Shown here in pieces: positions 1 through 64,000 of a DNA stretch of 64,000 bases (positions are counted from its first letter, which is position 1; the number at the start of each line of letters is the position of its first letter). This DNA is from Ophelia neglecta (taxonomy: Eukaryota): the NCBI GenBank assembly GCA_965285935.1, contig OZ260661.1, positions 93,000,001-93,064,000 of the forward strand, given 5' to 3'. The translations under genes were made by a program, and so were the position numbers. The notes beneath the pieces are model-generated. The model saw nothing but the letters and a program-made list of their open reading frames with translations, had not been told where the DNA came from and did no database searches.

Positions 1-264
1 GACCTGTTGGTCCGCGTTCTCCACGCTGTCCGTTGTTACCGGGCCTTCCTGCTTCACCAGGACCGCCCTGGCTTCCTTGCTCTCCTCGTTGTCCACTGGG
101 TCCAGCAGGGCCAATTGGTCCGGGTGGTCCGACAGGTCCAGATTCGCCTCTCTCGCCTGCTGGGCCGGCAGGGCCCAGGGGTCCAGCCGCTCCTGCGGGA
201 CCGGTGGGGCCAGATGGACCAGCGCTTCCACGCGCTCCGGGAGTGCCAGGTTGTCCTCGTGGAC
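1..264 (-). CDS. Gene A collagen exon (truncated by window edge)
   Basis: tag acceptor then [12 protein letters not shown]... Confidence 0.9.
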
Positions 265-3200
265 CTATGCGAAGAGTTTTGAAAAAATATCTTCATCGAG
301 AATTTAGTATGATTTGTTTTTTAGCCAGGCTAATCATGTAAAAATAATATTTAAATATGCTATTATATTTACCACATAATAACTGCTTTCATGATGTGTA
401 TATCTATAAGGTCCTGGATTAATACTCAACATATGAACTCCTAAATCTATTGCACCTTATTATTAAGTTCAGTGAAAAAGCCTACCACTAGGTCCTGATG
501 GCCCTGGCCCTCCTCTCTCGCCTGGCTCGCCTCGGGGACCTGCAGGTCCGGCGCTGCCCAAGGAGCCAGTGGATCCAGGTGGTCCTACCGGACCCCTTTC
601 TCCTCTCTCCCCTATAACAATTGCAATGATTTTAATGTAAGTATTATCCCGTTATCGGTATGTAGACATTAATGGTAAATAATTCAGGTTACAAGCAATC
701 GATCTATGGTTATGGAATATTTATAAGTCAAGACCAATAGAATGATATATAAAGGCATATTTAACTATTAGAAAGTGAAGCTTCATACCTGGCGTTCCTG
801 ATTGTCCTCGTTCTCCAGCCGGGCCTAATGGTCCGGTTGGTCCTTGGGGTCCTTGTTCTCCAGCCGTTCCTCGAGGTCCTAATGGTCCGGCTGGGCCTAC
901 TGGGCCTCGCCTGCCTGGTTCTCCATTTGTACCTGGTGGTCCAGACGGTCCGGCAGGACCAGTAGGGCCCCTTTCTCCTCTCTGTCCAGGCTGTCCGCTG
1001 GGCCCAACTCCGCCAGCTGAACCAGGCTCCCCGCGCTCTCCCTGTGGACCTGCAGGTCCAACAGGGCCAGACGGGCCTAGCTGTCCAGACTCGCCGGCTG
1101 GTCCTCGCTCTCCTCTCTCTCCTGGAGTGCCTGGTTGTCCGCGCTCACCTCGGGGTCCAGGCTCTCCTACTTCTCCTGTGGTGCCTGCAGGGCCAGCTGG
1201 TCCGGCTTCTCCTCTCGGGCCTGGCGAACCTGCCTCTCCCGGAGATCCAGGCTGGCCGCTTGCCCCCTGTTCTCCTCTTTCACCAGCTGGTCCGGCGGGA
1301 CCGGCTGGGCCTAAAGGACCAGAAGAGCCCGGAGGTCCGCTTGGACCCCGTTCGCCTCTGCTTCCAGCAGGTCCCGATGGTCCCCTGGCTCCGGGTTCAC
1401 CTGGCTGTCCGGGCTGACCACGCTCGCCCGCAGCTCCTGCGGGTCCGGCAGGTCCTCTCGGTCCTGTACGTAATAATCAAATTACTTTTTATTGCATGTT
1501 AGGCAAATGCGTAGGCAAATAAGAACGATCACATCGAAGACATAAGCATTTTCATGTATAAGTTGAATGTAAAGAACAAGCTTAGTTCCATAGGAATTAA
1601 TAAGCTGGGAAATTTATTTTCAGTAATTCTTGTTTTTCTTTGGTTTCCCATACCTACCTTGTCTGCCAGGTGATCCTGGTAAACCTGATTCACCAAGAGA
1701 GCCCGGTGGTCCGGTTTCTCCACGGGAACCTTGTGCTCCGGCTGGTCCAATTGGTCCCTGTGTTCCAGGGGATCCATCAGAGCCTGCTGTGCCTGGGGTT
1801 CCCCTTTGACCCTGCTCTCCAGGGCGGCCCACAGCCCCTGTGGGACCACGACCGCCGCCAGCTCCTGGTGGGCCCGAGGGTCCTGATGGTCCCGCGGGAC
1901 CGGAAGGTCCTTGTAAACCTCTTTCGCCTGGTGTACCAACTTCTCCGGCAGGGCCAGCAGGTCCACGTTCACCCGCAGGTCCTTGTGGACCCAATGGGCC
2001 GCCAGGTCCTTCAAACAACAAAACAAGGTAAGATTAATTCATTATTTAATGGCCATCCGGAAATGTAGGTTTAAAAAAACATTAATAGGATTGGTACTGC
2101 TTTTTAGCTGATATTTTATTTATGAAAGCACTTAAGAATTTTGAGTTGTATGGCTTTGTAAACCTGGGTATTATGCCCCTAGTATACACAGGCTTTCAGT
2201 GTATGAGTGAGTGAGCCAGTACCTGGACTGCCTGGAGTTCCTCGCTCGCCCTGCTCTCCTCGCTGTCCTCGCTCTCCGGCGGCTCCAGCTGGTCCGAGCG
2301 GCCCTGTTGGTCCGGTGGGTCCGGATGGGCCCCTCTCACCTCGGGGTCCAGCGGGACCGGCAGGTCCTACTCCGCCAGCCTCACCCGCGTTTCCAGGGAT
2401 TCCGCGCTCTCCTGAAGGCCCGGCAGGTCCGGGTGGCCCGGTTTGTCCTAGAGAGTAGACAAGTACATTGAAGATGCCATGCATTATGACTTCAGTAACA
2501 CGTATACAAGTCCACTGTTAAAAATACGGCTAATTTAATTCATTTTATACAATAATAAAATTGCATTTGTTTTTCTTCCGATCTTTAGGTAGGCTAATCT
2601 ATCTGTCAAACCCATTTTTAATAAATTGTTTTGGACACATACAAATTCTTTCTGTCCGTGTAGAACAGAGCTTATTTAAGGTGAGTTAATTAAAGATCCT
2701 TAGATTAAAGATTTTGCCGAACCCGGTGGTTACAACGATTCATAATATATGTCTGCGTCTGTTCTATAAAAAATTTATTTCTTTTATTTCTTTAAATAAC
2801 TTGCACTTCTAATCGGTTGAAATCTGAACTTCTTACTGGGTTTAACTTGTGTTTTACTAGTATAAAATGAATTACCCCCCGGTTAAATTAGCAAAGATTT
2901 GCTTCGCTGCCGTTGTCAGTTTATTTATTCAATCTATATTATTTATTAAATTGAGACTTTATTTGATGATATTAAGCAATAGTTCGCGTGAATTAATTGA
3001 AGATTCAACAGGCGTTATCATGGCGGATCATAATCATAATGAGAGAAACATGTATAGTGTGTATGTCTTCCCTGTAATTAATAGGAAAGCATCTAAATAA
3101 TTATATAATTAATCAATCTAATTACCAGAGGATCCATCACGGCCGTCTTCACCAGGCTCGCCGGCTGGTCCAGCCGGTCCGGCTGGCCCTCGTGGTCCGC

Positions 3201-6200
3201 TCTCTCCTTGTGGTCCTGTAGGTCCCTGTGGGCCGGAGGGCCCGTCAGCGCCGGCTGGTCCTCTAGGTCCCGTGGGACCCGGTAATCCGGCCGGGCCGGC
3301 TGGTCCGGCCTCGCCTGCGGGACCGCGTGGTCCTGTAACGGTAGGACCGTCCCTGCCAGGTTGGCCAGTTGGTCCACGGCTTCCTCTCTCTCCAGGCTCA
3401 CCGCGTTCTCCTGCTGGGCCGGCAGGTCCTCTCTCACCAGGCTGTCCGGTAGGTCCCGATGGGCCATCTTCACCTAGACAAAAAAAACAATTGAAAAGAC
3501 ATTTAGAGCCGCGAGCAAGGGTATGTGCGTTCCATGGGCACACTGACGAAAGCTTTCATAATCAAAAACACCAAAGAAACGTGGTTAATATCATTACACA
3601 TTTCAAATGTAAACGCATAATAGGTATAATATTTACCTCTTGATCCCTGGGTACCCCTCTCTCCTTGAGCACCACGCTCGCCAGCGGCTCCCGCAGGCCC
3701 GGATGGACCTGGCTCGCCTCGGCTACCAGCCGGTCCGGCGGGTCCAGTTGGCCCTCTTTCACCAGCAAGTCCTGGAGAACCGCCTTCACCGGTTTCTCCG
3801 GATGGACCTGCAGGTCCTGAGGGTCCAGCAGGTCCGACAGGTCCAAGTGGTCCACGTGCGCCACCAAGACCAGGTCTTCCTGACTCTCCCGCTTCGCCAG
3901 ATGGTCCAGAGGGCCCAGTGGGCCCTGGAGGTCCGATTGGTCCAGGTTCACCGCCTTGTCCTGTTGGTCCTCGGGGACCGGACTCTCCTGCAGATCCGTC
4001 GGGTCCTCTTTCCCCGGGTGGCCCAGTCTGTCCACCAGAGCCTGGCGATCCGCGCTCTCCGGCAGGCCCAGCAGGCCCTGGCCGTCCGTCAGGTCCAGTT
4101 GGCCCTGAGGGTCCTGCGCTTCCTCGGGCTCCTTGCTCCCCAGCAGGTCCGCGTGGGCCTTGCTCGCCGGTTGGTCCTGGACCTCCACGTTCGCCTGAGG
4201 GTCCCGCAGGACCGCGTGATCCAGTAGCCCCTGTAGTAAGTGACAAATATTAGTAAAACAATCTTAAAATCAATGTTTAGTTTCTAACAGTTTCCCAAAG
4301 CCAATACATCCATATAAAATATACTACTATGAAAATCAAACACTTTTAGAAACTGAAATGCAGATTCAGAGATGTTAAATATCTTTAAACTTTACCTGGT
4401 AAACCTACAGGTCCCCGTGCGCCTCCGCGTCCGGGTTCTCCTCTCGGCCCAGCAGGTCCTGCAGGTCCCGCCGGTCCGGTTGGTCCAGACTCACCAGGAG
4501 GTCCCTGAATGCCTCGCTCACCGCCGCCAGTAGCACCAGCAGGACCTGGGAAAAAGATAAAGGATTACAGGTCATTGTGGCATTCTTCACCCCTGACTGT
4601 GATGCCACAAAGCCGCCATGCATATAACTTAATTGAATTGCGTCCAACATAATCAAGCCTTTATAAAAAGAGTCTTTCATATTAATTGATTGAAAATTTT
4701 GTTATAGCAAACCAAGGCTGCGATGACTCCTTCCTTGGTGTGGAAAACATACAAGAAGGGGCTAGGCCAAGGGCCAGTACTTGCAAGACCCGCAATTATT
4801 ATCAACCCGATGGCATGTCACATCTTTAAGGTGTACTCAGTTCAAGAGTAGCAGACGGCAATTCAGCGCCCTCTGGTGTTCAAACTTATCTCAAAAAGAA
4901 ATTAACAGTTTATATGTGTACCTGGTGGTCCGACGGGTCCTGGCTCTCCACTCTCTCCAGGTTCTCCAGCTTGGCCTCGAGATCCACGAGATCCAGCCGG
5001 ACCTGGTGGGCCTACTGGCCCAGATTCCCCAGACTCGCCCGCTGGACCAGCTGGACCCGCAGGCCCAGTTTGTCCTCGAGTACCTTGGCCGCCTGGCTCA
5101 CCGCCAACTCCAGGTTCTCCGGCCGGTCCGGCCGGTCCTTGATGGTTAAAAGGGAGGATAATATTAAGTAATGAGTTATGAACATAAAATATATTTACAT
5201 AGCGATGAAAGTTAATACATGCATATTTTCAGGCAATCAGACACCACTCACCTGTTGGTCCCCTTGGTCCAGCCTGACCGGGAGGTCCTTGGCCTCCTCT
5301 CTCGCCAGATAACCCAGCAGGCCCAGCTGGTCCCAGAGGTCCTGGTGGTCCCACGGGCCCAGTGCCCCCAGGAATACCAGACGGTCCAGGCTGTCCAGTT
5401 GAACCAGTTGACCCATCCTGACCTGAGGGTCCAGTGGGACCGCGCTCTCCCGTAGGTCCAGCGGGTCCTCTTTCTCCTCGTTGCCCTCTTGGCCCAGTTA
5501 AACCAGATGGTCCCACTGGTCCTCGTGATCCTCTTTCACCGCCTGGTCCTGGCTGTCCTCTCGGACCCGTTGGGCCAGGTGGTCCTCGTTCTCCTGCTGA
5601 TCCGATACCACCGGACACACCAGGAGTTCCTCTCGGTCCTGCAGGTCCCAGAGGACCCGGCTGCCCGGGGAACCCGGCTTCACCTCGCTCGCCAGCTATT
5701 CCGGCTGGTCCTCTTTCCCCTCTTGGGCCTGGTGGTCCCACCGGTCCCACAGGTCCGGATTCTCCAGCAGTTCCAGGTGGGCCAGATGGGCCTAAAAGAA
5801 AGTACACGAAACAATATGCAGAAGGTGTCTAACAGGCATAATTCATGCATCGAGCCATAATTTTTTGAAGTACATCTGAATACAAATTAACCTAGTGTTT
5901 ACCTGCCTGTCCAGGGAGTCCATCACTTCCGTCTTGTCCAGGGAAACCAAGAGGTCCAGGGGGTCCTTGAGGTCCCCGTGAACCTTCCGGCCCAGCGGGA
6001 CCAGGGCCTCCTCGTTCACCGGGTGAACCTGGTATTACAGATTAACACAGCTTGACACATGCAGGGTTTCATTAGTCTAGGATTCGTACGAAAAGACAGC
6101 TAGGTCTATAGCGGTATATTTTATATTTGAAAGGCGTATAGGCTTATTTTTCATCTTTAATCAAGCCTATTTAAGAACAATCTCATGTTTTCGGAAAAAA

Positions 6201-9200
6201 AATTAACAACATTGCTGGGTATTATTAGATAATACGTCTCAAACATAGGGTTATTGATTGAACTGTAGACGTGGTATTACCAACTGAGCCGCCAGGTCCT
6301 CTCTCTCCCTGCGCGCCAGCTGGTCCGGCCGGTCCGAGTGGGCCTGGACGTCCCGTTGCACCAGTTCCACCCACCTGCCCGCGCTCTCCACTCTCTCCTC
6401 TAATACCGGCGGGTCCTCGTGGGCCTTGTTCTCCCTGCTCCCCGGGACCGCCGGCTTCTCCCGCAATGCCTCGTGGGCCTGTGGGTCCGGCTGGTCCTCG
6501 TGGACCTTGTTATGAAAAAATATACACTTATTTAACAAATAATGGACACAGCTACGTGTTGAGTTTAACTGCAATCATTTTAAGCGGACAGAGAGTTACC
6601 GGGATAATATATTTTGGACAGCTTCTTGCATAGCTTTACATTAGAATTTTAAAACACCTGTTGGTCCGACGGGTCCTCTTGTTCCGGGCTCTCCAGCAGG
6701 ACCTGCGGGTCCGGCTGGTCCGAGAGGTCCTGTCGGGCCTCCAATGCCAGGACCACCTGAGGGTCCCCGCTCGCCCCGCTCCCCAGACGCTCCGGGAGGT
6801 CCCAATGGCCCAGTGGGCCCTGATGGGCCAATGCCTCCAGCGTCACCGGCTGGACCACTGGGTCCAGTGGCTCCCGGAGGTCCAATCTGTCCGATTGGTC
6901 CTGACTCTCCTACTTCTCCACTGGGTCCTGGTTGTCCTCGGGGTCCCGGGCGGCCAGATGGGCCCGGTCCGCCAGGAGAGCCTCGCGGACCTGACTCTCC
7001 ACTCGCTCCCGCAGGTCCAGTTGGCCCTAGTTAACGATAAACACTACGTAGAGACACTTGCGCTCCTCACAATACCTTTACTATGTATACAGGTCTTTTT
7101 TTTTCAGTAATAGCCTATCTAAAGTCTAATGTACATCAATCATCTCGAGTTTTCTCGAGTCTCACTTTTCTATACATCTTTATTGACATGATAAAGCGTC
7201 AAATTATTAAATCCAAGCCCTTAAAAGCTCAAGACCTAACCTGTTGGACCAGCTGGTCCCGCCTCCGAGCCCCTGGGTCCTTGTGGTCCTCGTTCTCCTG
7301 GTGGTCCTACAGGCCCTAGGGGTCCAGCCTCTCCGGCTTCTCCAGAGGGTCCGGGTGGTCCAGCAGGTCCTCTTGGACCTTGGAAGCCCGGGCCTCCGAC
7401 TGGACCCGGTAGACCCGTCTCACCAGACTCCCCGGCTGGTCCTGCAGGTCCAGTTGGCCCGAGTGGGCCACTAGGACCGGAAACACCTGCCTCTCCGGAT
7501 GGCCCGGAGGGGCCGGCTGGCCCGCTTGGTCCTGCTAATCCTTGTTCTCCTGGAGGTCCCCCTTCTCCCGCTGGTCCACTGGGACCGGCTGGTCCTGTTG
7601 GACCAGGCAGTCCTCGTATCCCTGGTCCTCCACCTTCACCTGGCTGACCTGCGGGTCCAGCAGGGCCACGCAGTCCAGATTCACCTGGCGCGAAAACAAT
7701 TTAGAAGTTAATTCCGAGTGCGTGATGAGGTGTAAACTTCCTCTGCTTCAATGAAACGTAGAATGTATCATACATACTATTTGAGCTTAAAGATAGATTA
7801 CCGAGCTACTGCTATCCTTGTTGAAAAAACAAGTCGTATTTTGAAATAAGGCTAATTTACTTTGTGTGTACCCTACCTGGAGGTCCCGATGGTCCCGAGA
7901 TGCCAGGAGGTCCTGGTTCGCCTCGTTCTCCGGTGGGGCCGGCTGGCCCAGCTGGTCCGGGTTCAGAGCCTGGTGGACCGATCTCTCCACGTGGTCCAAG
8001 CTCTCCTCGCGGTCCAGGGGGACCAGTTGGTCCTGCTGGTCCCTCCGGTCCTGACGGTCCCGGAGGGCCGGATTGGCCGTCAAATCCTGGGCGACCTGCT
8101 TCACCTGGTGGTTCAACAAATATGTACATCAATAATAGCCAATTAGGTTATTATACTTGCACTTGCTGGCACATTATTAACACAAAAATCCTTTCAGAAA
8201 TACACCATTCAATTTTCCGTAGACATTTGTTGAGAAATTATGTGAGCGTACCTGGCCCTCCTGGGAATCCTGCTGGTCCTCTCTGTCCTCTGGGTCCTAA
8301 TGGTCCCAACGGCCCAGGTGGTCCCACTGGTCCTCTCTCACCGCGCTCTCCGGACTCTCCAGCAGGTCCTATTGGACCGGTGGGTCCCAGGCCACCGGGT
8401 CCGCCCGCAGGACCTGCGGGGCCTGAAGCCCCTGTTGCTCCGTTACTTCCATCGGCTCCCGGCGGGCCTGGTGGCCCATCAATTCCACGGGTTCCCTGTT
8501 CACCTCTTGGCCCGGATGGTCCTGAAGGTCCAACAGGTCCCCTCTCACCACCGAAGCCTGGTCCTCCAACAGGTCCCGCTGGTCCTCTCGGCCCCGGAGG
8601 TCCGACATTGCCAATGCCTCCAGGTGGCCCAGATTGTCCTGGTGATCCGGATGGCCCACTTTGTCCGATGGGTCCAGGTCCGCCTGGCCCTCCTCGTATA
8701 CCCTGGGGTCCTGCCGGTCCCCTTGGTCCTACTGGTCCAACAGGACCGTCGGCACCTGGCGATCCAGGTCCCCCTGTCTCACCAACAAATCCAGGTTGAC
8801 CCGTTTGTCCCCTCTCTCCAGGAAAGCCGGCGGGTCCTGCATGGTGATCAGTCAAAAGCGAACAGCATTAGGCTATAATTTATTATGCTAGATTAAGATT
8901 CCTGGTGGGAAATTACTATAAAGCGTGCTCAATAATACTTTGGGAATAAAATATTTTGTGTTAACTAATAACTCTGGAGAGTTGCAAGGGAAAGTCACAT
9001 ATAGATGGTTTGGAAATGAAAGCCTTTTTCGTTTCTCGAAACGAGCACCAGAGATATTGAATTAAGAAGGAAAACTTCAGGTCTTGAAAGAATTATATTC
9101 ACTGTAATGTAAATTGGCTGTTTGCCACTAATGCGTACCTGGTGGTCCGACTGGACCGATTGGTCCACGCGGTCCTGCTGGGCTGCTTCCTGGCGGGCCT

Positions 9201-12200
9201 GACACGCCGGGCTCGCCGGGTGGTCCTGAAGGGCCGGCAGGTCCTCTGGGTCCAGGTTCACCCGCAGGGCCGCTTCTACCCACCTCACCTGCAAAAAAGC
9301 AATTTATTTTGAACACATGTAGATCAAGAGAGCGTAGCACTAGCTGTTGTGGTCCTATCTAAATCTTACCGCAATACGAAATCGCCAACTGCGCAGATCA
9401 TAGAAGTAGTTTTGTATTTCTTACCGCTTGATCCGGGTGATCCAGCTGGACCGGAGGGGCCGGTCGGTCCACTTGGCCCAGACGGTCCTCTTTCCCCTGA
9501 AGGCCCAGCTGGTCCAGCAGGTCCAGGTCTGCCTGAGGGTCCTGTTGGTCCCCTTTGCCCAGTTGGTCCTGATTGAGTTCCATCGGGTCCCCGTGGGCCA
9601 GTGGGCCCTGGCGGGCCGATGGGTCCAGGAAATCCCGGGCCGCCGCTGATGCCAGGCGGGCCTCGGAAACCGGGCTCACCTGAAGGTCCGGCTTGACCAG
9701 AAAACCCTGGTCCGCCTGGTCCTCCTGCGGGTCCGGCCGGTCCGCGTTGTCCTCGGTTACCTTAAAAAGAATCAAATATAACAATAGTTCCATTACAAAT
9801 GGTTGAGCAACTCAGTCCCAATGTTTCTGTTCCCAACTTCCGGTTATTTATTCTAGACATGTTAGGCCTAGGCCCTAATAGATTTCTTCAAAGTAGGAGT
9901 AGTCATATTCCACATATGTGACACTATATTATATTATATTTTTTACCTGATGGTCCAGTTCGTCCAGGTGGTCCAATTGGTCCTCCAGGTCCTGCAGGTC
10001 CTAGCTGTCCACTTGATCCTGGAGGCCCTACGGGGCCTCTTCCTCCGGCCGGTCCAACGGGTCCAGCTGGTCCAGCAGGTCCGGATGGTCCTGCTAGGCC
10101 TACTTCACCTGGCGAGCCAGGTCCACCCGGAGGCCCAGGAAATCCGGGTCGGCCGGGTGGGCCACGTGGGCCGGGTTGACCTGGTTGGGAGCCGCGTGGC
10201 CCTGTACCGCCTTTGTCTCCAGCGGGTCCTCGTGGCCCCGCTGGTCCAACACTACCTGGGGGACCACTGGGTCCTTGAGGTCCGGGTCGTCCAGCTGGGC
10301 CGAGAGGTCCTCGTCCGCCGGGAGGTCCTGTAGCACCTGAAGAGCCTGGTGGCCCTCGAACGCCATCAGTGCCCGGTGTCCCGGCCGATCCGGCAGGACC
10401 AGTTCCTCCTGTTGCGCCTCGGGGACCACCTGGTCCAGGCGGTCCTATAAGAAAACCCATGGTATCAAGCGCTTGACATGCAATTCAGATTTAATAACCA
10501 TACAAATTTAACCTTTAATTTACGGTTCTACAAGGAGGTTGCTATTTATCTCCTTTTAAAGAAGAACAACTGACAGCCAATCAAATGTATTTTTAAAAAG
10601 ATTTGTCTTTCTTTTAAATATAGATATACATTTCTATCATTAATAGGCCTTATATGAATCTAATTGTGAATAAAGAAGTAAAATCAAGAAGGTCAATGAC
10701 AAGGTCTTACGTTATATAAAATCAAGCATATTCCGCTTCATGTATGGTGTAATTAAGACTAATTAAATTATCGTTTTCTAATTTGATATGAACCGCATTT
10801 GGGTATATTTTATTCATGCTGTGCATGTGTAATGATTAGGTGCATGAGGGTAAGGGACATTCATTTGCAACAGCGATTTGTTTCAATTTTTAAAGATAAA
10901 TGGGATATCGAATGACGTCCTGCAAAACAGCAATTATATACTATACTAGCATCTATAGTTGAAGATATTAATAATACAAAGGTTGTCTTTCACAGAAAAA
11001 TCTTACAAAACACAATTTTAGCCCCTTCGAGCGAAGTTTCCTGTTATAACTTATCTTTCCGGAAATATTTTAGAACACTTTATCTGTGAAAGACAGCCAG
11101 TGGTAAGGAGAAAGGGCACCCAGTTTGAAGAGACAAATCATTTTCATACTGTGCTCAAATATGTTTCATCGTGCAGGGATAATTTGTGAACTAAAATCAG
11201 ATGGTCACTGACAATGGTGTCAGAGTTACTAATTTTTCAGTGCGGTGAGTAGTACAGAGATAGCTCATTCTGGCGCAGACGATACATGCAAGAGATAAGT
11301 AGCAGTGACCATATGGTTTTATTTCATTTTTAAAGCCTGCAGTAAATATGGATTTATGCGTTTAACTTTCAAACATATAGATCAAAATCATGTCATTTAT
11401 CATCTTTGGGTGCGCTTCATCCTTGATGTGACTTATATTACAGTGATTTGTGCATATTGATGTTGTTTGATTGCCAATATAGCCGCGCAATATAAAGAAC
11501 ACAGCGCAACGCAAGAAAATGTATAGAGGGTTGGGGCGTTGCGGTAAACTTCGTCCTATACCTGGAATGGGTACGGGGCCTGGGGCTACAATGTATCCAG
11601 GACAGATGGTCCTCATCAGTCTTTCGACCAGGATCTCTCTCTCCCGAGCGGAGCCATAGCCCTCAGATACGTAGTAGGCACGACTGGTGGTTGAGGCGAT
11701 CACCTGGAGGGCCCCCAAATTGATTCCCGATCCAAAGCCTACAGAGGTGATGACGATGTTGTTATCCACTCTAGCTCTATTCAGCTGAGTTACAAACTCT
11801 CTCTCCGGCTCTCGGCCCATGATGACGATGGCGAAATCGGGGATTCTTGGTCGATCTCCCCGGCCTCCACTGAATATGCTATCGGTCATCACCCGGAGTC
11901 CCTCGTCCAGGAAGTGATCGGATCGACTCATCCTGCTAAGGGTATTGATTCTTTGTCGCACCTCCAGATTGGTGTAGTAGCGATCAAGGTAGAATGACAC
12001 CTCCCCTACGCTACTATAGCGGACGGTTGAAAAATGAACATTAGGCTCGCCGATAGTGAACTGTTGGGAGAGGAGACTTGCAAGATCTCTCATTGAGTCC
12101 CACAGCAGGTTGGAGAGGTCCTCTCCGGCGTCCAGCACTATCGCCACATCGCTGAGGTTCCGACATCCTGTGCGGATATGAAAAGCAATTATTGTTTGAA

Positions 12201-15230: not shown

Positions 15231-15331
15231 AGCCCTATAGGCCTGGTCGGGCCTTGTCTGGACAACTGGCTCCCGCCGTTCACGAGGCTCAGCTAAATCA
15301 GACAAGGCCTTCCGACGACTCGCCTTGGCTA
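15231..15331 (-). promoter_or_regulatory. Conserved 5'UTR RNA stem-loop element, copy A
   Basis: 11-bp stem GGCCUUGUCUG/CAGACAAGGCC (15309-15299 with 15260-15250); shared with gene B copy. Confidence 0.8.
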
Positions 15332-21935: not shown

Positions 21936-21974
21936 CCCCCAACCCCCCACCCCCCACCCCCCACCCCCACCCCC
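21936..21974 (-). repeat. C-run tract (G-quadruplex-capable on minus strand)
   Basis: CCCCCAACCCCCCACCCCCCACCCCCCACCCCCACCCCC. Confidence 0.6.
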
Positions 21975-36634: not shown

Positions 36635-36686
36635 TGGGGGGTGGGGGGTTGGGGGGGGGGGGGTTGGGGGGAATATGGGGGGGGGG
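36635..36686 (+). repeat. G-run tract (G4-capable)
   Basis: Five runs of at least 6 G. Confidence 0.65.
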
Positions 36687-50967: not shown

Positions 50968-51060
50968 GGCCAAGGTAGTCCATTGGAAGGCCTTGTCTGT
51001 CGTTAGCTACACCTGACAACTCGGGTGTTGGTTGTCCAGACAAGGCCCGTTTATAAGGCC
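50968..51060 (+). promoter_or_regulatory. Conserved 5'UTR RNA stem-loop element, copy B
   Basis: GGCCUUGUCUG (50989-50999) pairs with CAGACAAGGCC (51037-51047); upper stem ACACCUGA-caac-UCGGGUGU. Confidence 0.8.
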
Positions 51061-51126
51061 CGTCAAAATTGTTTCTATTGTCTGGTGCTTCGCCAGACAA
51101 ACTTAAAACGGGCAGCGAAGAAAGAA

Positions 51127-51338: not shown

Positions 51339-51450
51339 ATGGAACCCCCGGGGTCTTCTTATAGAAGGCCATTCGGGTCACGTGAGACCTCACGTACCTT
51401 TGTTGCTCTACTGTTTTTCCTGAATGTGATAATTACAAGCGGTCAGAGAT
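51339..51450 (+). CDS. Gene B start and signal peptide (exon spans 51331-51450)
   Basis: [37 protein letters not shown]; T|gtaagt donor. Confidence 0.85.
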
Positions 51451-54400: not shown

Positions 54401-57400
54401 CACCGCCTGCGGAATTACCGTCACTAGCGGTGGAAGCGGTGGTAAAGAGAGCTAGCTGACTTGTTATAATCGCAAATAATAAAAATTTGTTTTCACTTGA
54501 GTTCTTATGTTATTGAAACATAAACCATATTGCTTACAAGTAGGCCTATATATAACTCATAGAATATCAGCATAGCCCACGTATTAAAATAGCAAATTTA
54601 TATATAAGAATTCCATTGAAATACCTTATAAAATTTTGAAAATACCCCCCAAAATTAAATTGCTTTAATGCTGACACGGACTTTGAATCATGCAGTGCCT
54701 GGTCCCCCCGGTCCGCCCGGCTCTATTGGATCAACCGGAGCGAGAGGACCACCCGGAGCAAACGGAAACCCCGGAAGAGATGGAAGTCCAGGATCTGCCG
54801 GAACTGCAGGAGTAGCGGGCCCACCAGGGCAAACTGGACCTATCGGTAAGCATTGTTTTAGTTCTTCCTGCCTATTAATTATCAATCATTTTACTTCTGT
54901 ACAAATTAAGCAATATTTACTAAGCTTTAAGTATTTCGTTATATAGTTGGATATATTTTGTAGGTCTATAATATGAAATAGTCTTGAAGGAACAATTATT
55001 ACAATTTAAAAAAAATCCTCCTTTTTTCCTGCAGGACCTTCCGGATCTGACGGACGACCTGGTCCTTCAGGTCCTTCTGGACCAGCAGGCCCATCAGGAC
55101 CGGCTGGACCACCCGGACCCCGCGGAGATACTGGCCCAGCCGGACCAGCCGGGTCTCGAGGAGAGGCAGGACCTGCCGGTCCACTCGGTCCTTCGGGCCC
55201 ATCTGGGCCTTCAGGACCACGGGGAGAACGCGGCCCAAGTGGACCATCAGGTCCAGCCGGGCCATCAGGACCAGCCGGGTCACGAGGCGAATCTGGATTC
55301 CCAGGACCAAGTGGGAGCGCAGGAGGCACTGGACCACCCGGGCCACCTGGGCCTTCCGGCCCTGCTGGATCACAAGGACCACCTGGAACAAATGGTGAAC
55401 TTGGACCCCCAGGACCCACCGGGCCCTCGGGACCACTTGGCCCCTCAGGAGGTACTGGACCATCCGGACCAAGAGGAGAATCTGGACCACCTGGGCCAGC
55501 CGGGCCATCAGGACCAAGAGGGCCATCAGGACCATCAGGGCCATCAGGCCCTGCCGGTTTCCCTGGTCCCGCAGGAGGCGCGGGAGCCACGGGATCACCC
55601 GGACCATTGGGGCCATCCGGACCGGCCGGTCCGTCAGGACCTAGAGGTGAGAGCCAATAATGACAAAGCTAGTTTATATAAATATAAAAAAATAATAGTA
55701 TGGTAAACCGCAAGTGCATTATCTGTAGCTGTAGACAATTAAACATCATTTTGAATATTTAGGCGACCGTGGAGAAGCTGGACCACCTGGACCTACTGGA
55801 CCGAGCGGCCCGACCGGACCTTCAGGCCAACAAGGTGGCACAGGGTTCCAAGGACCATCAGGATCACGAGGAGATGTCGGCCCAGCAGGACCCTCTGGAC
55901 CATCTGGACCACGAGGTCCATCCGGACCCTCAGGTACATTGTGCACATATATACTGGTAACATAACTAGGTTAACAATTCCCCTTGTAGGTCTGGTAGGT
56001 CAGCATGTTTTCAGTGGTCAATGATAAGCATGAGCTGCAAGGATGCATTGTGTAGGTGTATATTCATTAAGCGTTTGTGAATTTGTAGGTCCGCCCGGAC
56101 CATCCGGCCAACCAGGACCATCTGGACCCTCCGGACCAGCAGGGCCTTCTGGGCCTCGAGGCGAGACAGGTTTTGGTGGAGCCCAGGGTGGCACTGGAGG
56201 AACTGGATCACAAGGCGCCACAGGTGCTACTGGTCGCCCTGGCCCTACAGGGCCATCAGGACCGTTGGGGCCGACTGGACCGGCGGGGCCGTCAGGACCT
56301 TTGGGACAGTCCGGCGGAACAGGACCCTCAGGTATTCTTATCGAATAACTAAATCCATTCGAAACCTGAACATTTAATGATATATCAATTTATTCATCTA
56401 TGTTAGTCATTTACCTATTTTTGTTATCTATTTCTTCTGGTAATTCATATATCTGGTTACAGTTGTTACTGCTCAAAACAAATCCTACAGTGTATATGAA
56501 TACTTAAATATTTACATATTAAACGGAGAAATATTACAAGAATATTGTAAAGTAATGTGATAAAGCAATGAACCGTTACAACTAGTACACCCGTTGAAAT
56601 CCATTGAGAATGAAAGTCATTGTTCTCCTTTTTAGGACCACCTGGACCATTGGGACCCGCAGGACCAACTGGACCCCGTGGACCTGCCGGAGAGAGCGGA
56701 CCACCAGGACCCTCTGGACCACAAGGCTCCCGAGGTGAATCTGGACCAGCTGGACCATCAGGCCCAAGCGGATCTCCAGGAGAGCGGGGTGAATCCGGAT
56801 CTCCTGGACCATCTGGGCCATCCGGCTCAACTGGACAACCGGGATCTCGCGGCGAACCTGGACCACCCGGACCTACTGGACCATCCGGGCCCAGTGGACC
56901 TTCAGGTCCATCTGGCCCATCTGGTCCTCGTGGAGATAGAGGAGAAGCAGGACCCTCTGGGCCTTCGGGCCCAAGCGGTCCGTCTGGCCCCGCAGGTGCG
57001 TTCAGTCATTTGTACAAATTATTTTATTCTTTATATATTATGATAATGTTATGTTTTTGCTAAAGGAAATGTTTGAAGCCACGATTTATTTGTCTTCGTA
57101 GGAGAATCTGGACCTCCAGGGCCTTCTGGACCATCAGGACCTACTGGACCAACTGGACAATCTGGCGGTACTGGACCTCCCGGCCCCCTGGGGCCCTCAG
57201 GGAGACCCGGTCCATCAGGACCTGCTGGGCCAGGCGGGGAGAGAGGACCCGCTGGCGAGAGAGGGCCCGCAGGACCTGCCGGACCACCAGGTCCAAGCGG
57301 TCCTTCAGGATCTCGCGGAGAATCAGGACCATCAGGACCCGCCGGACCCAGCGGACCATCAGGTATATTTTGATTTTATGTGCTCTATACAGTAGCTTGT

Positions 57401-60400
57401 ATAAACTACCGTATGGCAGGTATAGGCCTACATTTCTATCATCAACTTGTTTGATAATTACGAATACATTAATGTTCCAATTTAATTTTCTGAGGCTTAT
57501 CGACAAGCATACTGTTATATGGGACACCATTCGTTTTATTTGGAGAAAAAAGCGTTGTTGATAAAGAGTAAGTTGTGCATGCATATAAACCTTGATTTTC
57601 CTCCAAGGTCCCAGAGGCGATGTGGGTCCTCCCGGACCAAGCGGTCCATCCGGACCTAGAGGACCATCAGGGGAGCGAGGAGAGTCTGGTCCATCTGGAC
57701 CTAGCGGACCCTCTGGACCTCCTGGTCCTCGTGGAAGCGCAGGAGAACGAGGAACCTCTGGGCCAGTGGGACCAACTGGTCCCTCCGGTTCACCCGGAGC
57801 TACCGGCCAACCAGGTAATATATTTTGGTTTAAACATTAAATCTACCTATTAAGCCTTCATCTGGTTGATTGATACATGCCATGGCAAAATAAACCTGAA
57901 CAAATAGTGACTTCCCAATATAACAAGACTATACAACTTGTGTTTGTCGTATTGTTTAGGACCCACTGGACAATCAGGACCATCCGGACCCTCTGGTCCT
58001 CCCGGCCCGAGAGGAGATCGTGGAGAGCCCGGTCCGTCCGGACCTTCTGGATCCCGAGGAGAAGCCGGTCCTTCCGGGCCAGCAGGCCCTACAGGACAAT
58101 CTGGACCACGTGGACAACCAGGGCCCTCAGGACCCGCTGGAAGCCGAGGAGAAGCAGGTCCTTCCGGACCTGCCGGTCCCCCTGGCCCTAGTGGTAATTA
58201 GGCCTAATAAGATTATACCGTGTATTGCATTCTAACAATGGTGTAAAGTAAAAAAAAAATGAACACGCTATGATTTATTCAATTTATTTAAATCATACCT
58301 TAATAGGGCCTTCTGGACCCTCTGGACCGCGAGGAGATCGTGGCGAGTCAGGACCCGCAGGCCCCTCCGGACCCTCTGGCCCAGCTGGAGAATCCGGACC
58401 CCAAGGACCTACTGGACCCCGAGGATTCCCTGGACAATCAGGTCCCACTGGACCGGCTGGAGCAACTGGGCCTAGCGGCCCTCCGGGACCACTTGGACCA
58501 CTAGGACCAGCGGGCCCGTCTGGACAATCAGGACCTTCGGGACCACGAGGAGAAACTGGAGAAACCGGCTTGGGCGGTCCACCTGGGTCTGCTGGCCCAT
58601 CTGGACCATCAGGTCCACCCGGACCTGTGGGCAGACCAGGACCTCGCGGAGAATCAGGATTGCCTGGACCATCAGGTACCTACTCTTAACTGAAAAATAG
58701 GGCTTACAATTTGATAAAAAGATAAGGGAGGTTTGAATTTTGTTTTAGGCCTATTTCAAATAGATGTAAACCTTGGATATGGTGCATTTACAATTTTACA
58801 CATATTACAGGTGAAAGTGGGCCAGCTGGACCCGTTGGACCCGCAGGACCCGCAGGAGCTAGAGGACCATCCGGACAGCGCGGAACACCAGGAGAGGCAG
58901 GTCCAGCTGGACCTCAAGGAAGCCGAGGGGAAGCAGGACCCACCGGACCCGCTGGATCACCAGGCAGTGACGGTCAGCCCGGACCCGCAGGACCAACTGG
59001 TCAAAGGGGCGAGCGAGGAGAGGCCGGATCTCCCGGCACAGCCGGAGATAGAGGACCACCTGGTCCAACTGGCGAAAGAGGAGAGCCTGGCTTCCCCGGC
59101 TCTGCCGGACCTCGTGGAGAATCAGGAACAGCCGGATCACCAGGAAGTCCTGGTGGCACTGGTAAGTGAAATGTATTAGGACTTCAACAAATCAAAATAC
59201 ATCATTTGTACTTAACAACTATATACCTGTGATATTTTAACAGTGATGCTGCGTTTAAATAACAATTCTTGTTTTTCAGGGCCTGCGGGACCTGCGGGAC
59301 CAAGGGGCCAGTCAGGTTTCCCTGGACCTGCCGGACCTGCTGGACAAAGGGGTGAACCTGGACCGCAGGGTCCACAGGGGTCGCGAGGTGAGAGAGGAGA
59401 GTCAGGAACGCCTGGCGGTGTTGGCCCACCAGGGCCAGTGGGTAGCCAAGGTGGCACTGGCCCAGCAGGACCCAGAGGAGAAACCGGACCTGCCGGACAA
59501 GCTGGTGAACTATTTTTTTCTTCTTGGCCTTTGCATTCTGCTTTATGAGCTCATAGATATTTCAGTATATGAGTTCATGATGTGCGTGCTAACTGGAAAT
59601 CGATCACTCTATTTCAGGCGAGACTGGACCCGCTGGACCCACTGGGCAACGCGGAGAGTCAGGACCAAGTGGCCCTGCCGGAACACCGGGAAGCGCAGGT
59701 GAGCGTGGAGAATCCGGCCCCGCAGGTCCACAAGGTGCCAGGGGAGAAGTCGGTTCTCCTGGACAAGCTGGTACCCCAGGGAGTGATGGACGACCAGGAC
59801 CAAGTGGACCTGCCGGTCCTACCGGACCAGCAGGACCGTCTGGACCGTCAGGTCCTTCGGGACCAGCTGGACCTCGAGGAGAAAGAGGAGAAACTGGACC
59901 AGCTGGACCGACTGGTGAATCCGGATCGCCTGGTAAGTTTTGTATTATTTCACTATTAGTTATAACGAACTCTTAGCACTTGAATTAAAAAACATGACGT
60001 ATTGTTTTATTTGATGTCGCTTATCACACCGTTTTATATTAAGGACCCTCCGGCTCACCTGGGCCACGAGGATCGGCTGGGGAGAGAGGACCGGCCGGAG
60101 AACGTGGTGAAACAGGACCTTCAGGTCCATCAGGCCCTACAGGGCCCCGAGGACAACCTGGCCCATCCGGCCCTGCTGGCTCAAGAGGCGAACCCGGTGA
60201 GGCTGGTCCCTCAGGTCCCCGCGGGCCTCGAGGTGAGTCAGGTCCTGCCGGACCCGCTGGTCCTACTGGTCAACCAGGGCGTGGAGAGCGAGGAGAAGCT
60301 GGTCCAGCTGGGCCAGCCGGACAACCGGGACCGGCAGGTCCACCTGGCCCCCTCGGACCCACTGGTGAAGCTGGACGAGCAGGAGAGCCTGGGCCTAGGG

Positions 60401-63400
60401 GAGAATCAGGTAAGGAAGTTTTGAAAGACTCATCCCCCCAAATTGAAAAAAAATGGAATTGTTGTGTTGAACGGCAATAACATGAATTTATATACGTGTG
60501 TTTAAAGGTGCTGACGGACAGCCTGGACCCTCCGGACCTACAGGACAGCCAGGGCCTTCTGGACCCTCTGGATCACGTGGAGAAGTAGGACCACCAGGAC
60601 CCGGTGGTCAGAGAGGTGAGCCAGGCCCTGCTGGTCCACCTGGAAGTCTCGGACCCTCCGGACCCGCTGGACCAGCCGGTCCTCGCGGAGAGGCAGGTGC
60701 TAGAGGCGAACCAGGACCTAGAGGAGAATCTGGATCTCCTGGTACTCCAGGGTCTAGGGGAGAGGTCGGTCTACCCGGTTCTTCCGGACAGAGAGGCCCC
60801 GCTGGTCCTTCTGGACAATCAGGACCCGCAGGATCACCCGGACCCCGCGGAGAAGCAGGACCAGCTGGCGCTGATGGTACGTTACACCTTCATTTATTTC
60901 CCTATTTTCTGGAAGTAGTATTCATCGACTAAACTCCTGGAATCAGTAAGTCTATCCACAGCTTGTTGACCTATTATTTTCTATCGCCTTAGGTGAGCCT
61001 GGTCCAAGTGGGCCCTCTGGACCAGCCGGTCCAGTTGGACCATCTGGCCCTGCAGGACCACGAGGAGAGCGTGGCGAAGGAGGCCCACGTGGAGAGCGAG
61101 GTGAAACTGGTCCTGCTGGACCTACAGGACAGAGCGGAAGCCCAGGACCCGCCGGGCCTTCAGGACCAAGGGGCGAACCTGGCTCACGAGGAGAGTCCGG
61201 TCTACCGGGCGAATCAGGTATTCCACCAAAAAACATATTTCTTTTATCTATATAAAAAAAATAATATTTTCATTTTTATTCACTCGCATTTTCGACTTCA
61301 AGCGAGTTATATGCCCAACACATATATAATAATGAACATGGCAATGCGTGTTTTCGCTTACATTAAATCTTAATGTACATTGCGAAAATCTTCGCCTAAT
61401 TTCTTAGATTAACTGCAGAAATAAATAAAACGTATTCTTATGTATTTTTTTTTCTCTGCAGGGCGACCGGGCCAGGCAGGTCCAGCTGGGTCAAGAGGAG
61501 AAACCGGACCTGCTGGACCCCAGGGCGCACGGGGAGAGCCTGGACAAAGAGGCGAACCTGGATCCGCTGGAACCCCAGGAAGTGCTGGAGGACCCGGCCC
61601 AGCCGGACCCGCTGGAGAAGCAGGACGTCCTGGCCCCGCTGGTCCCTCAGGACCTCGAGGTGAAGTTGGACCTGCCGGCGAAGCGGGCAGAACCGGACCC
61701 TCTGGACCATCTGGACCAGCTGGACCATCAGGTCCAAGAGGAGAGGTTGGACCCTCTGGACCCGCAGGATCGCCAGGCCCGAGAGGCCAGGCTGGCACTC
61801 CGGGAAGTCAAGGTCGGCACTGCTTACTAAATTGTTTACTAAATCAAGTCTCTGTCGGTTGACTTAAACACAAACACCACCGATTATGTCCATCACCGTT
61901 GTTATTGTCTATAAAATATAACCATAACATTGCAGGCGGCACTGGACCTGCAGGACCTTCCGGTCCTCGAGGAGAAACTGGCTCACCTGGCCCATCCGGC
62001 TCTCGCGGAGAGCCCGGACCCGCCGGCCCAACCGGCGAGAGGGGCGAATCTGGTTTACCAGGTCCTTCGGGACCAGCTGGACCCTCGGGACCGGCCGGCT
62101 CCCCCGGACAAAGAGGAGAACAAGGACCAAGAGGAGAATCGGGAACTCCAGGACCATCTGGTACGTACATTTAAAGCTGGAATTAGAGATTTGATAGAAT
62201 TATTAAACGATACAATATCTTCGGTATTTAATTATTCGCGGCAAATAATGGCGAACACTTTATTATTTCAGGATCTCCCGGTCAACCCGGACCGTCAGGA
62301 TCTCGAGGTGAACCAGGACCCGCAGGACCACAAGGTCAAAGGGGTCAATCTGGTGAACGAGGTGAAACAGGACCGGCTGGTCCCTCCGGACCCTCAGGTC
62401 CTGCTGGACCCGCTGGTGAAAGGGGAGAACCAGGCCCTGCCGGGTCACAAGGACCAAGCGGATCAAGGGGAGAGCCAGGTCAAGCCGGAGAGGCTGGAAG
62501 ACCAGGCCCACAAGGGCAATCTGGATTCCCTGGACCTGCTGGACAAAGAGGCGAGAGCGGGCTTCCTGGCTCACCCGGGCCACAAGGACCAAGAGGTGAA
62601 ACAGGTACAGCAGGAAGTGTCGGGGAACAAGGACCGCCAGGTCCCGCTGGATCTAGAGGAGAGTCAGGACCCGCTGGAACACCTGGCTCAAGGGGAGAAA
62701 CTGGTCCCCAGGGACCTGCAGGAGAACGTGGAGAGCCCGGACCATCCGGACCCGCAGGTCCCTCTGGGCAAGCTGGACCCTCTGGGCCAGCCGGTCCCAG
62801 AGGAGAGGCTGGTCCCCGGGGAGAATCGGGTACGCCAGGATCTTCTGGACAAAGAGGAGAGCCAGGAACAGCTGGTCCACGAGGAGAAGCAGGACCCCAA
62901 GGTCCACAGGGCGCAAGAGGCGCTCCCGGTGAACGAGGAGAGTCAGGTACCCCAGGCTCTGCCGGCCAACGAGGAGAATCAGGACCACAGGGTCCAACAG
63001 GCCAATCAGGTCCTTCCGGACCTGCCGGACCCCCTGGACCAAGAGGTGAGACAGGACAAAGAGGTGAAAGCGGACCTCAAGGACCAGCAGGAACTCCAGG
63101 AGAGCGCGGAGAAAGCGGTCTAACAGGACCATCCGGTCCTGCTGGCCCAGCTGGTGAATCCGGAAGGCCAGGAGAACAAGGATCGCCAGGACCTTCAGGT
63201 AGGCTCATCTGTCGATAGTATTCTCTTCTTTGTTTCTTTCAATAGTTAACCTTCATTGACCATATAACATACATAAAATGTTTGGATAACATGGGATAAA
63301 CGCAATTTTGTAGGAGGACCTGGCCCAGCTGGCCCTGCTGGAAGCCGCGGAGAATCTGGCCTACCAGGACCCTCAGGTCCGAGAGGTGAGGCAGGAACTC

Positions 63401-64000
63401 CAGGAAGCCCAGGACAGCGAGGAGAACCAGGACCTGCAGGACCTAGTGGCCCAGCAGGAAGTCAAGGACCATCTGGGCCGGCTGGTTCCCCAGGGCCCAG
63501 AGGAGAGCGAGGCGAAACTGGTCCCGCCGGACCTGCAGGTAATTTCATGACCGGTCATTTGCGTACTTTATCTTCCCAATTGTTTATGCATTTGTCATTA
63601 GCTTTGAATCTTAGATAAATTATTGCAGCCTTTTATTGTTTACAAACTGAGGAACGGGTGATGAAATAATAAGAAGACAAATTTCATATTTACGGTAGAT
63701 ATGTCATTTTGCAAAAGCAAAAGTCTAAAAAGTGCCCTTGTCTGTATATTAAAGGAGAGTCAGGATCCCCTGGTCCAGGAGGAGAGAGGGGAGAGCCAGG
63801 ACCAGCAGGACCCAGTGGACCAGCAGGTCCCCGCGGTGAAGCAGGCCCTGCAGGGCCAAGTGGATCAAGAGGCGAGTCCGGACCAGCTGGACCAGCTGGA
63901 CCATCTGGACCTGCCGGTCAACGAGGCGAACCTGGACCCAGAGGAGAAGCTGGACCTCGTGGAGAGTCTGGAACTCCAGGAACACCAGGAGAGAGGGGAG
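51339..64000 (+). CDS. Gene B: secreted giant collagen alpha chain with two N-terminal vWA domains (multi-exon, 3' end outside window)
   Basis: Spliced GT-AG model: 51339-51450 (signal peptide), 51648-51945 plus 52300-52583 (vWA1), 53833-54441 (vWA2), then 20 Gly-X-Y exons from 54696 to >64000. The frame is continuous; ~2140 collagenous residues lie in the window. Confidence 0.94.
51648..51945 (+). CDS. Gene B vWA1, first exon
   Basis: [19 protein letters not shown]...RVGATRYA...GSTNTAAGI; MIDAS DxSxS and Thr present. Confidence 0.93.
52300..52583 (+). CDS. Gene B vWA1, second exon
   Basis: [23 protein letters not shown]...ILTVGIG...ICPSPP; phase 2 junction joins in frame. Confidence 0.93.
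53833..54441 (+). CDS. Gene B vWA2 exon (609 nt, phase 1-1)
   Basis: [18 protein letters not shown]...GSTNT...[14 protein letters not shown]...ACG. Confidence 0.94.
54696..54845 (+). CDS. Gene B first collagen exon, 150 nt
   Basis: VP followed by 16 Gly-X-Y triplets. Confidence 0.9.
55035..55646 (+). CDS. Gene B collagen exon, 612 nt (68 triplets)
   Basis: Gly-X-Y, AG/GT flanks. Confidence 0.92.
55763..55933 (+). CDS. Gene B collagen exon, 171 nt (19 triplets)
   Basis: Gly-X-Y, AG/GT flanks. Confidence 0.9.
56089..56331 (+). CDS. Gene B collagen exon, 243 nt (27 triplets)
   Basis: Gly-X-Y part of ORF 56043..56348. Confidence 0.9.
56636..56995 (+). CDS. Gene B collagen exon, 360 nt (40 triplets)
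   Basis: Gly-X-Y part of ORF 56620..57063. Confidence 0.92.
57102..57362 (+). CDS. Gene B collagen exon, 261 nt (29 triplets)
   Basis: Gly-X-Y, AG/GT flanks. Confidence 0.9.
57608..57814 (+). CDS. Gene B collagen exon, 207 nt (23 triplets)
   Basis: Gly-X-Y part of ORF 57592..57840. Confidence 0.9.
57960..58193 (+). CDS. Gene B collagen exon, 234 nt (26 triplets)
   Basis: Gly-X-Y part of ORF 57938..58201. Confidence 0.9.
58307..58675 (+). CDS. Gene B collagen exon, 369 nt (41 triplets)
   Basis: Gly-X-Y part of ORF 58270..58689. Confidence 0.9.
58811..59161 (+). CDS. Gene B collagen exon, 351 nt (39 triplets)
   Basis: Gly-X-Y, AG/GT flanks. Confidence 0.9.
59280..59504 (+). CDS. Gene B collagen exon, 225 nt (25 triplets)
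   Basis: Gly-X-Y part of ORF 59243..59548. Confidence 0.88.
59618..59932 (+). CDS. Gene B collagen exon, 315 nt (35 triplets)
   Basis: Gly-X-Y, AG/GT flanks. Confidence 0.9.
60044..60409 (+). CDS. Gene B collagen exon, 366 nt, with G-R-GER break
   Basis: GQP GR GER, break at 60277-60285. Confidence 0.9.
60508..60876 (+). CDS. Gene B collagen exon, 369 nt (41 triplets)
   Basis: Gly-X-Y part of ORF 60498..60932. Confidence 0.9.
60993..61217 (+). CDS. Gene B collagen exon, 225 nt (25 triplets)
   Basis: Gly-X-Y, AG/GT flanks. Confidence 0.9.
61462..61812 (+). CDS. Gene B collagen exon, 351 nt (39 triplets)
   Basis: Gly-X-Y part of ORF 61440..61862; weak GTCGGC donor. Confidence 0.87.
61936..62160 (+). 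CDS. Gene B collagen exon, 225 nt (25 triplets)
   Basis: Gly-X-Y part of ORF 61899..62174. Confidence 0.9.
62272..63198 (+). CDS. Gene B collagen exon, 927 nt (103 triplets)
   Basis: Gly-X-Y, AG/GT flanks. Confidence 0.92.
63314..63538 (+). CDS. Gene B collagen exon, 225 nt (25 triplets)
   Basis: Gly-X-Y, AG/GT flanks. Confidence 0.9.
63755..64000 (+). CDS. Gene B collagen exon (truncated by window edge)
   Basis: aag acceptor then [12 protein letters not shown]... Confidence 0.9.

Follow-up and report, generated by a model that had tools for sequence, protein, structure and literature searches.

A divergent gene pair of Ophelia neglecta that probably encodes membrane-anchored chains of a giant annelid cuticle collagen

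Since the 1960s and 1970s, the cuticle collagen of worms has stood out as the longest known collagen molecule by a wide margin. The locus described here raises the question of whether it encodes chains of that molecule and, if so, how such chains are built. It lies in a 64-kb stretch of the Ophelia neglecta genome (GenBank assembly GCA_965285935.1, contig OZ260661.1; G000:C1:93000001-93064000), which is called the window in the following. From the letters of the window alone, two divergent genes had been predicted, each with a signal peptide, vWA domains and more than 2,100 Gly-X-Y residues, and each open-ended. For the present analysis 60 kb were fetched on each side, 120 kb of flanks in total. 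The predicted arrangement was found: the window contains the 5' quarters of two divergent collagen genes, designated P (plus strand) and M (minus strand). These are probably the ancient paralogous chain genes of a giant (~2.5 µm) annelid cuticle collagen, the chains being made as membrane-anchored procollagens of type I topology.

In a six-frame scan of the window, Gly-X-Y runs were confined to two blocks, 1-10444 on the minus strand and 54696-64000 on the plus strand. GC content is 50-57% at the ends of the window, while the middle is AT-rich. After splicing, 2,136 Gly-X-Y residues of M and 2,142 of P fall within the window, and neither gene terminates inside it. Both begin with signal-peptide-like sequences followed by matches to the Pfam VWA domain, and the start codons are 36.5 kb apart. 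The coding features in the window are the following.

1 to 10444, minus strand: gene M, collagen exons in the window, the first ~18 exons (67 collagen exons in full)
11562 to 12167, minus strand: gene M, single vWA exon (Pfam VWA, E 7e-21), with a phase-1 intron on either side
14795 to 14882, minus strand: gene M, first coding exon; ATG at 14882, signal-peptide-like hydrophobic start MRPPRL..., phase-1 donor after ..IDAQ
51339 to 51450, plus strand: gene P, first coding exon; ATG at 51339, signal-peptide-like hydrophobic start MEPPG..., phase-1 donor
51648 to 52583, plus strand: gene P, vWA domain 1 in two exons, 51648-51945 and 52300-52583 (Pfam VWA, E 1e-19 and 9e-12)
53833 to 54441, plus strand: gene P, vWA domain 2 in a single exon (Pfam VWA, E 3e-34); metal ion-dependent adhesion site (MIDAS) DGSTS
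54696 to 64000, plus strand: gene P, collagen exons in the window, the first 20 exons (58 collagen exons in full)

P has two vWA domains and M one, domain 2 of P being without a counterpart in M. Within the window, domain 1 of P is nearest to the M domain, with an identity of ~26-34%. Its MIDAS is intact (DASTS), and that of M is degenerate, DAGED replacing DxSxS. The best solved relatives are collagen VI alpha3 and the vWF A domains for the M domain, and collagen VI alpha3, integrin I domains and vWF A for domain 2 of P. A word search with the M vWA exon yielded nothing at E 1e-10. An exhaustive HMMER search with the same exon was dominated by multi-vWA proteins at 20-27% identity and gave one useful ortholog fragment, P0057. 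The first coding exon of M has an ortholog, MRPPG...EAQ, in another species (L037:8150).

Both helices continue far into the flanks. That of P extends to the right as far as window-equivalent position 89734 (loci L008 to L010), that of M to the left as far as -28874 (loci L007 to L005), resulting in Gly-X-Y domains of 8,652 (P) and 8,640 (M) residues. At 0.286 nm per residue this corresponds to 2.47 µm, and the mass of the helix domain is ~0.77 MDa for each chain. The giant chain length, for which the window alone had indicated more than 0.6 µm, was thus confirmed by extension in both directions. The whole proteins comprise ~9,260 (P) and ~9,000 (M) residues, specified by genes of 39 and 44 kb, respectively.

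These lengths come from rule-based exon models, with one M exon patched by hand; homology searches were run exon by exon and not with the joined full-length models. Altogether 125 collagen exons, 58 in P and 67 in M, could be joined without a stop codon, and the Gly-X-Y register is intact at every modelled junction. Nearly all introns are in phase 1 and split the Gly codon (G/GN); in the few of phase 0 or 2, donor and acceptor are matched. The helices are interrupted by 7 (P) and 11 (M) breaks, each of 1-3 residues and all located within exons. Pro occupies the X position in 44% (P) and 39% (M) of the triplets and the Y position in 22% and 20%, both chains have GPA and GPS among their most frequent triplets, and Lys and Cys are absent from both helices. 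A strong higher-order sequence period was considered and rejected, as autocorrelation gave only weak peaks, near 48-57, 102, 156 and 204 residues.

At the C-terminal end, the junction into the final exon is in phase 1 in both genes, with the codon G/CA (Ala). The final exons are located as follows.

L010:5898-6418, plus strand: gene P, last exon, encoding linker, transmembrane helix and tail
L005:514-893, minus strand: gene M, last exon, encoding linker, transmembrane helix and tail

In both proteins, ~30 extracellular residues are followed by a hydrophobic helix at residues 33-57 of this exon (Kyte-Doolittle means of 2.25 and 2.88), then by basic residues (RRIRR in P, RLGR in M) and a tail of ~115 (P) or ~70 (M) residues. 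Since the signal peptide is N-terminal and the membrane helix is C-terminal and followed by basic residues, a type I orientation is indicated. No Pfam domain was detected in the last exon of either gene, so that there is no COLFI C-propeptide. Matching C-terminal trimerisation domains of the classical kind, which the original prediction had called for, are absent from both genes; instead, both end in the same succession of linker, membrane helix and tail. Alignment of the two last exons is possible over the membrane helix only, there residue for residue, and the tails are otherwise unrelated.

Word searches with the last exons identified seven P-type relatives (52-81% identity) and four M-type relatives (58-79%). 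In some of these the anchor is directly joined to collagen. The sequence L016 (SRR22548862, 9,240 nt) contains one frame of 2,660 residues in which Gly-X-Y leads by way of ..GFM-A-MQADL.. to the membrane helix and the tail. The same read-through is seen in L018, L019 and L020 for another P-type sequence, and L022 (ERR6349737) contains the M-type junction ..GSPVM-A-LRGDF.., matching the one predicted here. From their uninterrupted frames, we infer that L016, L018-L020 and L022 are transcripts of related worms. When eight P-type and five M-type sequences were aligned, the membrane helix and blocks in the tail were nearly invariant and the outer linker was variable. AlphaFold2 predicted, at low confidence (predicted local distance difference test, pLDDT, of 54), a single continuous helix over residues 5-57, that is linker and membrane segment, and disorder for the remainder. 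A look-up of the P tail in the ESM Atlas gave weak likeness (0.81 or less) to generic single-pass membrane tails, which was treated as uninformative.

Two further observations concern the regions on either side of the membrane helix. All eight P-type tails (L010:5900-6415, P0001-P0007) end in ..NLRGLF.PDS.S.F, the Ser-x-Phe end resembling a class I PDZ-binding end; M-type tails have a different ending. On the outer side, the last ~200 helix residues (L010:4629-5734; L005:1126-2372) are rich in Gly-X-Thr triplets with Trp, Phe or Tyr at X (GATGWTG, GRTGATG). This Thr-rich membrane-proximal stretch forms a sub-domain of its own, in which nucleation of the triple helix may take place.

Comparison of P and M with each other revealed an old but precise relationship. 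From helix residue ~1,500 to the C-terminal end the two chains align without net insertion or deletion at a constant offset of 12 residues, and identity outside Gly is ~30% versus 17% at wrong offsets. Exactly coinciding intron positions number 36, and the first and last junctions are homologous. Breaks are located 5449, 4396, 3458 and 656 residues from the helix C-end in both chains, two of them Gly substitutions and two one-residue deletions. All unshared breaks in the C-terminal ~7,100 residues are length-neutral changes of Gly to Ser or Gly to Ala. In the P-type transcript of another species the break at 656 recurs, and the match is ungapped over 2,480 residues at 73% identity. To judge from these comparisons of sequence, P and M are true ancient paralogs from a whole-gene inverted duplication. 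The inverted duplication proposed earlier therefore stands as far as whole-gene paralogy is concerned (intron positions, junctions and the four in-register breaks), but it has to be regarded as ancient in view of the low identity of vWA domains and helix.

Both chain types were found in the same other samples (ERZ25069296, ERR14113986); therefore, the duplication predates the splits between those species. In one other assembly, an M-type vWA exon (53% identical) and an M-type tail are located 34 kb apart on one contig, with the MRPPG... signal exon upstream. Within the 16 kb walked upstream of the M ortholog in a second species, no P-type exons were seen. Because the breaks are in register from the membrane end, P and M probably co-assemble or co-pack, which falls short of proving a heterotrimer. 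Such a break pattern would be expected of chains whose register is fixed at the membrane end and has to be preserved as zipping proceeds. The cuticle collagen of Nereis reportedly contains two distinct subunits, which would fit two genes.

Several properties connect these chains to the annelid cuticle. According to a review (PMC11766948), the collagen of annelid cuticles forms a very long triple helix that carries globular domains, and lengths of up to 2.4 µm were obtained for worm cuticle collagen by rotary shadowing (Gaill et al. 1991, as quoted in PMC2443231). The 2008 paper containing the quotation (PMC2443231) doubted that such lengths are single helices or chains. The modelled length of 2.47 µm compares with this published value, and one (M) or two (P) N-terminal vWA domains are available as terminal globules. 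Earthworm cuticle collagen is unusually rich in 4-hydroxyproline (4-Hyp) at the X position, in Gly-4Hyp-Yaa tripeptides (PMC8233474), and a paper by Goldstein and Adams, according to its title, likewise bears on X-position hydroxyproline of cuticle collagen. The excess of Pro at X over Y in P and M is consistent with this chemistry; Pro codons are present as required for Gly-Hyp-Ser and Gly-Hyp-Ala, hydroxylation itself being unreadable from DNA.

Proteins of this size have been noted before. The sole genomic mention that was found is in the genome paper of Alvinella pompejana (BMC Biol 2025;23:274, PMC12403961), which lists collagens of 8,859 aa for Alvinella, of 7,719-8,689 aa from transcriptomes of Paralvinella and, as a single entry, for Eisenia, the last with fractions of 0.40 for G-P-Y and 0.22 for G-X-P. 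They belong to the same size class as P and M and have similar proline fractions (0.39-0.44 and 0.20-0.22 in P and M), but only lengths and proline fractions are given, without domains, membrane helix, paired genes, break register or a claim of cuticle genes. Biochemically characterized annelid cuticle collagens (Nereis, Lumbricus, Alvinella, Riftia, Arenicola) share with P and M the length class, the X-position imino bias and the globules, which are vWA domains in P and M. Their descriptions contain no membrane anchor, cytoplasmic tail, gene pairing or C-end register. A sequence-level architecture of annelid cuticle collagen was not found in the literature. Hence, the size and chemistry of the molecule and the bare existence of ~8,800-residue proteins in annelid gene sets are already known. 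What is new, as far as the literature shows, is how the chains are laid out in full, their C-terminal anchor and its conserved tail, the pairing of ancient paralogs whose breaks are in register, and the conserved hairpin described below.

The annelid origin of the sequence, part of the original prediction, was supported by a marker domain. Eryth_link_C (PF16915), the C-terminal domain of the linker of annelid giant haemoglobin, was detected in the Ophelia neglecta genome at 61 bits, above the Pfam cut-off, and in none of 14 control genomes. There are two matches 12 kb apart (G000:C9:13863492-13875402; L014, L015), probably tandem giant-haemoglobin linker genes.

Shared regulation of the two genes through common UTR and splicing elements had also been proposed, and their head-to-head pairing had been likened to that of collagen IV genes. 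When the 5-8 kb upstream of each gene were compared, one significant match was obtained, an element of 84 nt with 76% identity between the copies, each in gene orientation.

15248 to 15329, minus strand: hairpin element, M copy, 366-447 nt upstream of the M start codon; lower stem GGCCTTGTCTG / CAGACAAGGCC
50969 to 51049, plus strand: hairpin element, P copy, 290-370 nt upstream of the P start codon

Either copy folds into a long hairpin of the same form (M, -41.9 kcal/mol, z -3.4; P, -40.5 kcal/mol, z -4.4). The lower stem of 11 bp is identical, and the upper stem differs in sequence but remains paired by compensating changes. Aside from its partner copy, the element is single-copy genome-wide. 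In another species it is kept ~500 nt upstream of an M-type start codon (L037:7585-7647), with a single A-to-G change that converts a pair to G.U and therefore fits an RNA-level structure. The duplicated hairpin is the only shared non-coding element found, one copy per gene, and supports a putative shared regulatory element.

The analogy to collagen IV itself was not upheld. Collagen IV genes, like P and M, form pairs of divergently transcribed paralogous chain genes, but they share a promoter of a few hundred bases. With 36.5 kb and repeats between the start codons, P and M are divergent without a compact shared promoter, and a collagen IV-type bidirectional pair was ruled out. Likewise, the 35.6 kb that separate the hairpin copies do not accord with a single short bidirectional promoter.

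Other known collagen classes were also considered. Fibrillar procollagens (I-III, V, XI and invertebrate homologues) resemble P and M in having long uninterrupted Gly-X-Y domains with the register fixed C-terminally, which implies zipping from C to N. In contrast to them, P and M have no COLFI C-propeptide, helices 8.5 times longer than 1,014 residues and no Lys for lysyl-oxidase cross-links. Exons of fibrillar collagens follow a phase-0 pattern of 54 bp, whereas introns of P and M are almost all in phase 1 and split the Gly codon. The fibrillar assignment was rejected for the missing COLFI domain, a helix of 8,640-8,652 instead of ~1,014 residues and the phase-1 introns. The vWA collagens VI, VII, XII, XIV and XXVIII share N-terminal vWA domains beside a collagen helix, but P and M lack FN3, TSPN and Kunitz domains, have helices 6 to 25 times longer and are membrane anchored. 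A vWA collagen or a fibril-associated collagen with interrupted triple helices (XII, XIV, VI, VII) was excluded, as Pfam gives VWA and Collagen only and the 7 and 11 breaks of 1-3 residues occur in ~8,650 residues.

A parallel in principle is offered by the transmembrane collagens, i.e. the membrane-associated collagens whose triple helices are interrupted (MACITs) XIII, XXIII and XXV, and collagen XVII. They are held by a single membrane helix, their trimerisation is believed to begin in a juxtamembrane segment, and their ectodomain can be released by shedding; the same principle is proposed for P and M. However, they are type II proteins with an N-terminal membrane helix and short interrupted helices folding from N to C, whereas P and M are type I with a nearly unbroken helix of ~8,650 residues. 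An assignment to this group was rejected on the basis of the signal peptide and the C-terminal membrane helix. MACITs were not found in annelids (PMC4678570).

Putting the parts together, the product would consist of a signal peptide, a terminal globule formed by the vWA domains (one in M, two in P), the helix of 8,640-8,652 residues, a linker of ~30 residues predicted to be helical, the transmembrane helix and the conserved tail. The membrane helix and the juxtamembrane linker may hold three chains side by side in the membrane of the endoplasmic reticulum and set their register there, standing in for the fibrillar C-propeptide. Triple helix formation would then be nucleated in the Thr-rich segment adjacent to the membrane and zip towards the N-terminus. 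At the apical surface of the epidermis, the rod could be shed into the cuticle or retained as an anchor between cuticle and cell.

A number of findings weigh against this interpretation. Assignment to annelids depends on a single marker domain and a literature parallel and is likely, not proven. Cuticle collagen is extracted as soluble rods with globular domains (PMC11766948), and a membrane-anchored precursor therefore requires a shedding step; when the linker was inspected by eye, neither a furin-type site nor any other recognisable motif for shedding was seen. Conservation of this extracellular linker is poor, and its AlphaFold2 model is of low confidence. A run search for the locus returned no RNA run, the three runs with intron and exon words alike being DNA. 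Finally, the N-terminal ~1,500 helix residues of P and M have no positional homology and hold six small length-changing breaks in M and one in P, a poor fit to a heterotrimer in this part. This last point would be better accommodated if P and M were both giant cuticle collagens, each forming a separate homotrimer in other fibre layers, stages or body regions, with equal length and breaks kept for fibril packing or functional sites. The different vWA complements, the unrelated cytoplasmic tails outside the membrane helix and the Gly-to-Ser and Gly-to-Ala substitutions private to each chain are also in favour of homotrimers. On the other hand, P and M share every length-changing break in the C-terminal 7,100 residues, each equally far from the C-end in both and without net insertion or deletion, the pattern expected of chains zipping together, and the two membrane helices match residue for residue at the same position. 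Separate homotrimers are therefore considered rather unlikely, though they come closest among the alternatives.

It appears much less probable that P and M serve outside the body-wall cuticle, for example as a permanent anchor at epidermal-cuticle or muscle attachments, in a role like that of collagen XVII, or in the matrix of gut, pharynx or chaetal follicle. The strong conservation of the tail blocks, including the P-type end, would agree better with a lasting cytoplasmic function than with a throw-away folding aid. However, the sole collagens of such length on record are worm cuticle collagens (PMC11766948, PMC2443231), with whose chemistry the X-position Pro bias agrees, and a rod of 2.5 µm far exceeds any known adhesion receptor. 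That the extreme length is an artefact of assembly or modelling, the true genes being much shorter, can practically be dismissed. Collagen exons are repetitive, a caution the Alvinella authors give for their own prediction (PMC12403961), and the exon models were built by rule, not from same-species RNA. Against an artefact stand the in-frame splicing of all 125 exons with zero stop codons and preserved register, and the agreement of two independent genes in length within 12 residues with breaks in register. In addition, the ortholog in another assembly spans 34 kb from vWA exon to tail on one contig, no insertion or deletion disturbs the collinearity of the 9.2 kb transcript contig from another species, 97-100% of the words sampled from the 3' region are present in three DNA runs, and proteins of 7.7-8.7 thousand residues were derived from transcriptomes of other annelids (PMC12403961). 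An ancient pair of membrane-anchored cuticle collagen chains is accordingly the preferred explanation.

A third collagen gene was found by means of the P tail (G000:C8:46005790-46032392, minus strand; loci L027 and L029-L032). Its last exon also encodes linker, membrane helix and tail. The helix comprises ~5,200 Gly-X-Y residues (~1.5 µm), with Thr in 68% and Pro in only 3% of the Y positions. No vWA exon was detected within 44 kb upstream. In its composition the predicted product looks like the threonine-type worm cuticle collagen, a Thr-dominated vent-worm cuticle collagen being known from the title of a paper. The third gene points to the membrane anchor as a trait that cuticle-type collagens of annelids have in common.

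The region between the two hairpins yielded no recognisable protein domain in its longest reading frames.

15330 to 50968, no strand: spacer between the two hairpin elements, 35.6 kb, AT-rich (36-40% GC), with interspersed repeats

Eight long reading frames of the spacer gave no match to Pfam, and no Rfam family was matched anywhere in the window. An interspersed repeat of ~190 nt occurs in several copies in both orientations with 82-90% identity (31692-31866, 37678-37868, 38323-38748), and G-rich and C-rich tracts are present at 21936-21974, 33300-33360 and 36629-36686. In the downstream flank of P, window-equivalent 95784-100000 (L011:1784-6000, plus strand), two open frames, one of 581 residues and the other of more than 829, follow directly on the gene and are probably part of a retrotransposon. 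On the contig with the M-type ortholog (ENA ERZ25069296, ctg23454), a public "495-residue gene" at L037:1978-3462 is a translated (TG)n microsatellite.

The locus provides complete gene structures in which a length of 2.47 µm is encoded in one chain. It comprises two old, co-linear chain genes in which a conserved membrane anchor takes the place of the assembly domain usual for collagens. How three chains of 8,650 residues are registered, how a rod of 2.5 µm is exported and how orthogonal fibre layers arise around epidermal microvilli thereby become testable. The very long, lysine-free and nearly perfect triple helices could also serve as a natural model for collagen folding studies and materials work. 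More tentatively, with the odds somewhat against it, P and M may define an undescribed collagen class, the type I membrane-anchored giant procollagens, with the third gene of ~5,200 residues and Thr in the Y position included. In this class, the nearly invariant C-terminal transmembrane helix, in place of an extracellular propeptide, would select and register three chains, ~8,650 residues would zip away from the membrane, and the tail would handle traffic or cytoskeletal attachment of a 2.5 µm cargo, which would explain how the annelid epidermis builds and orients its cuticle fibres.

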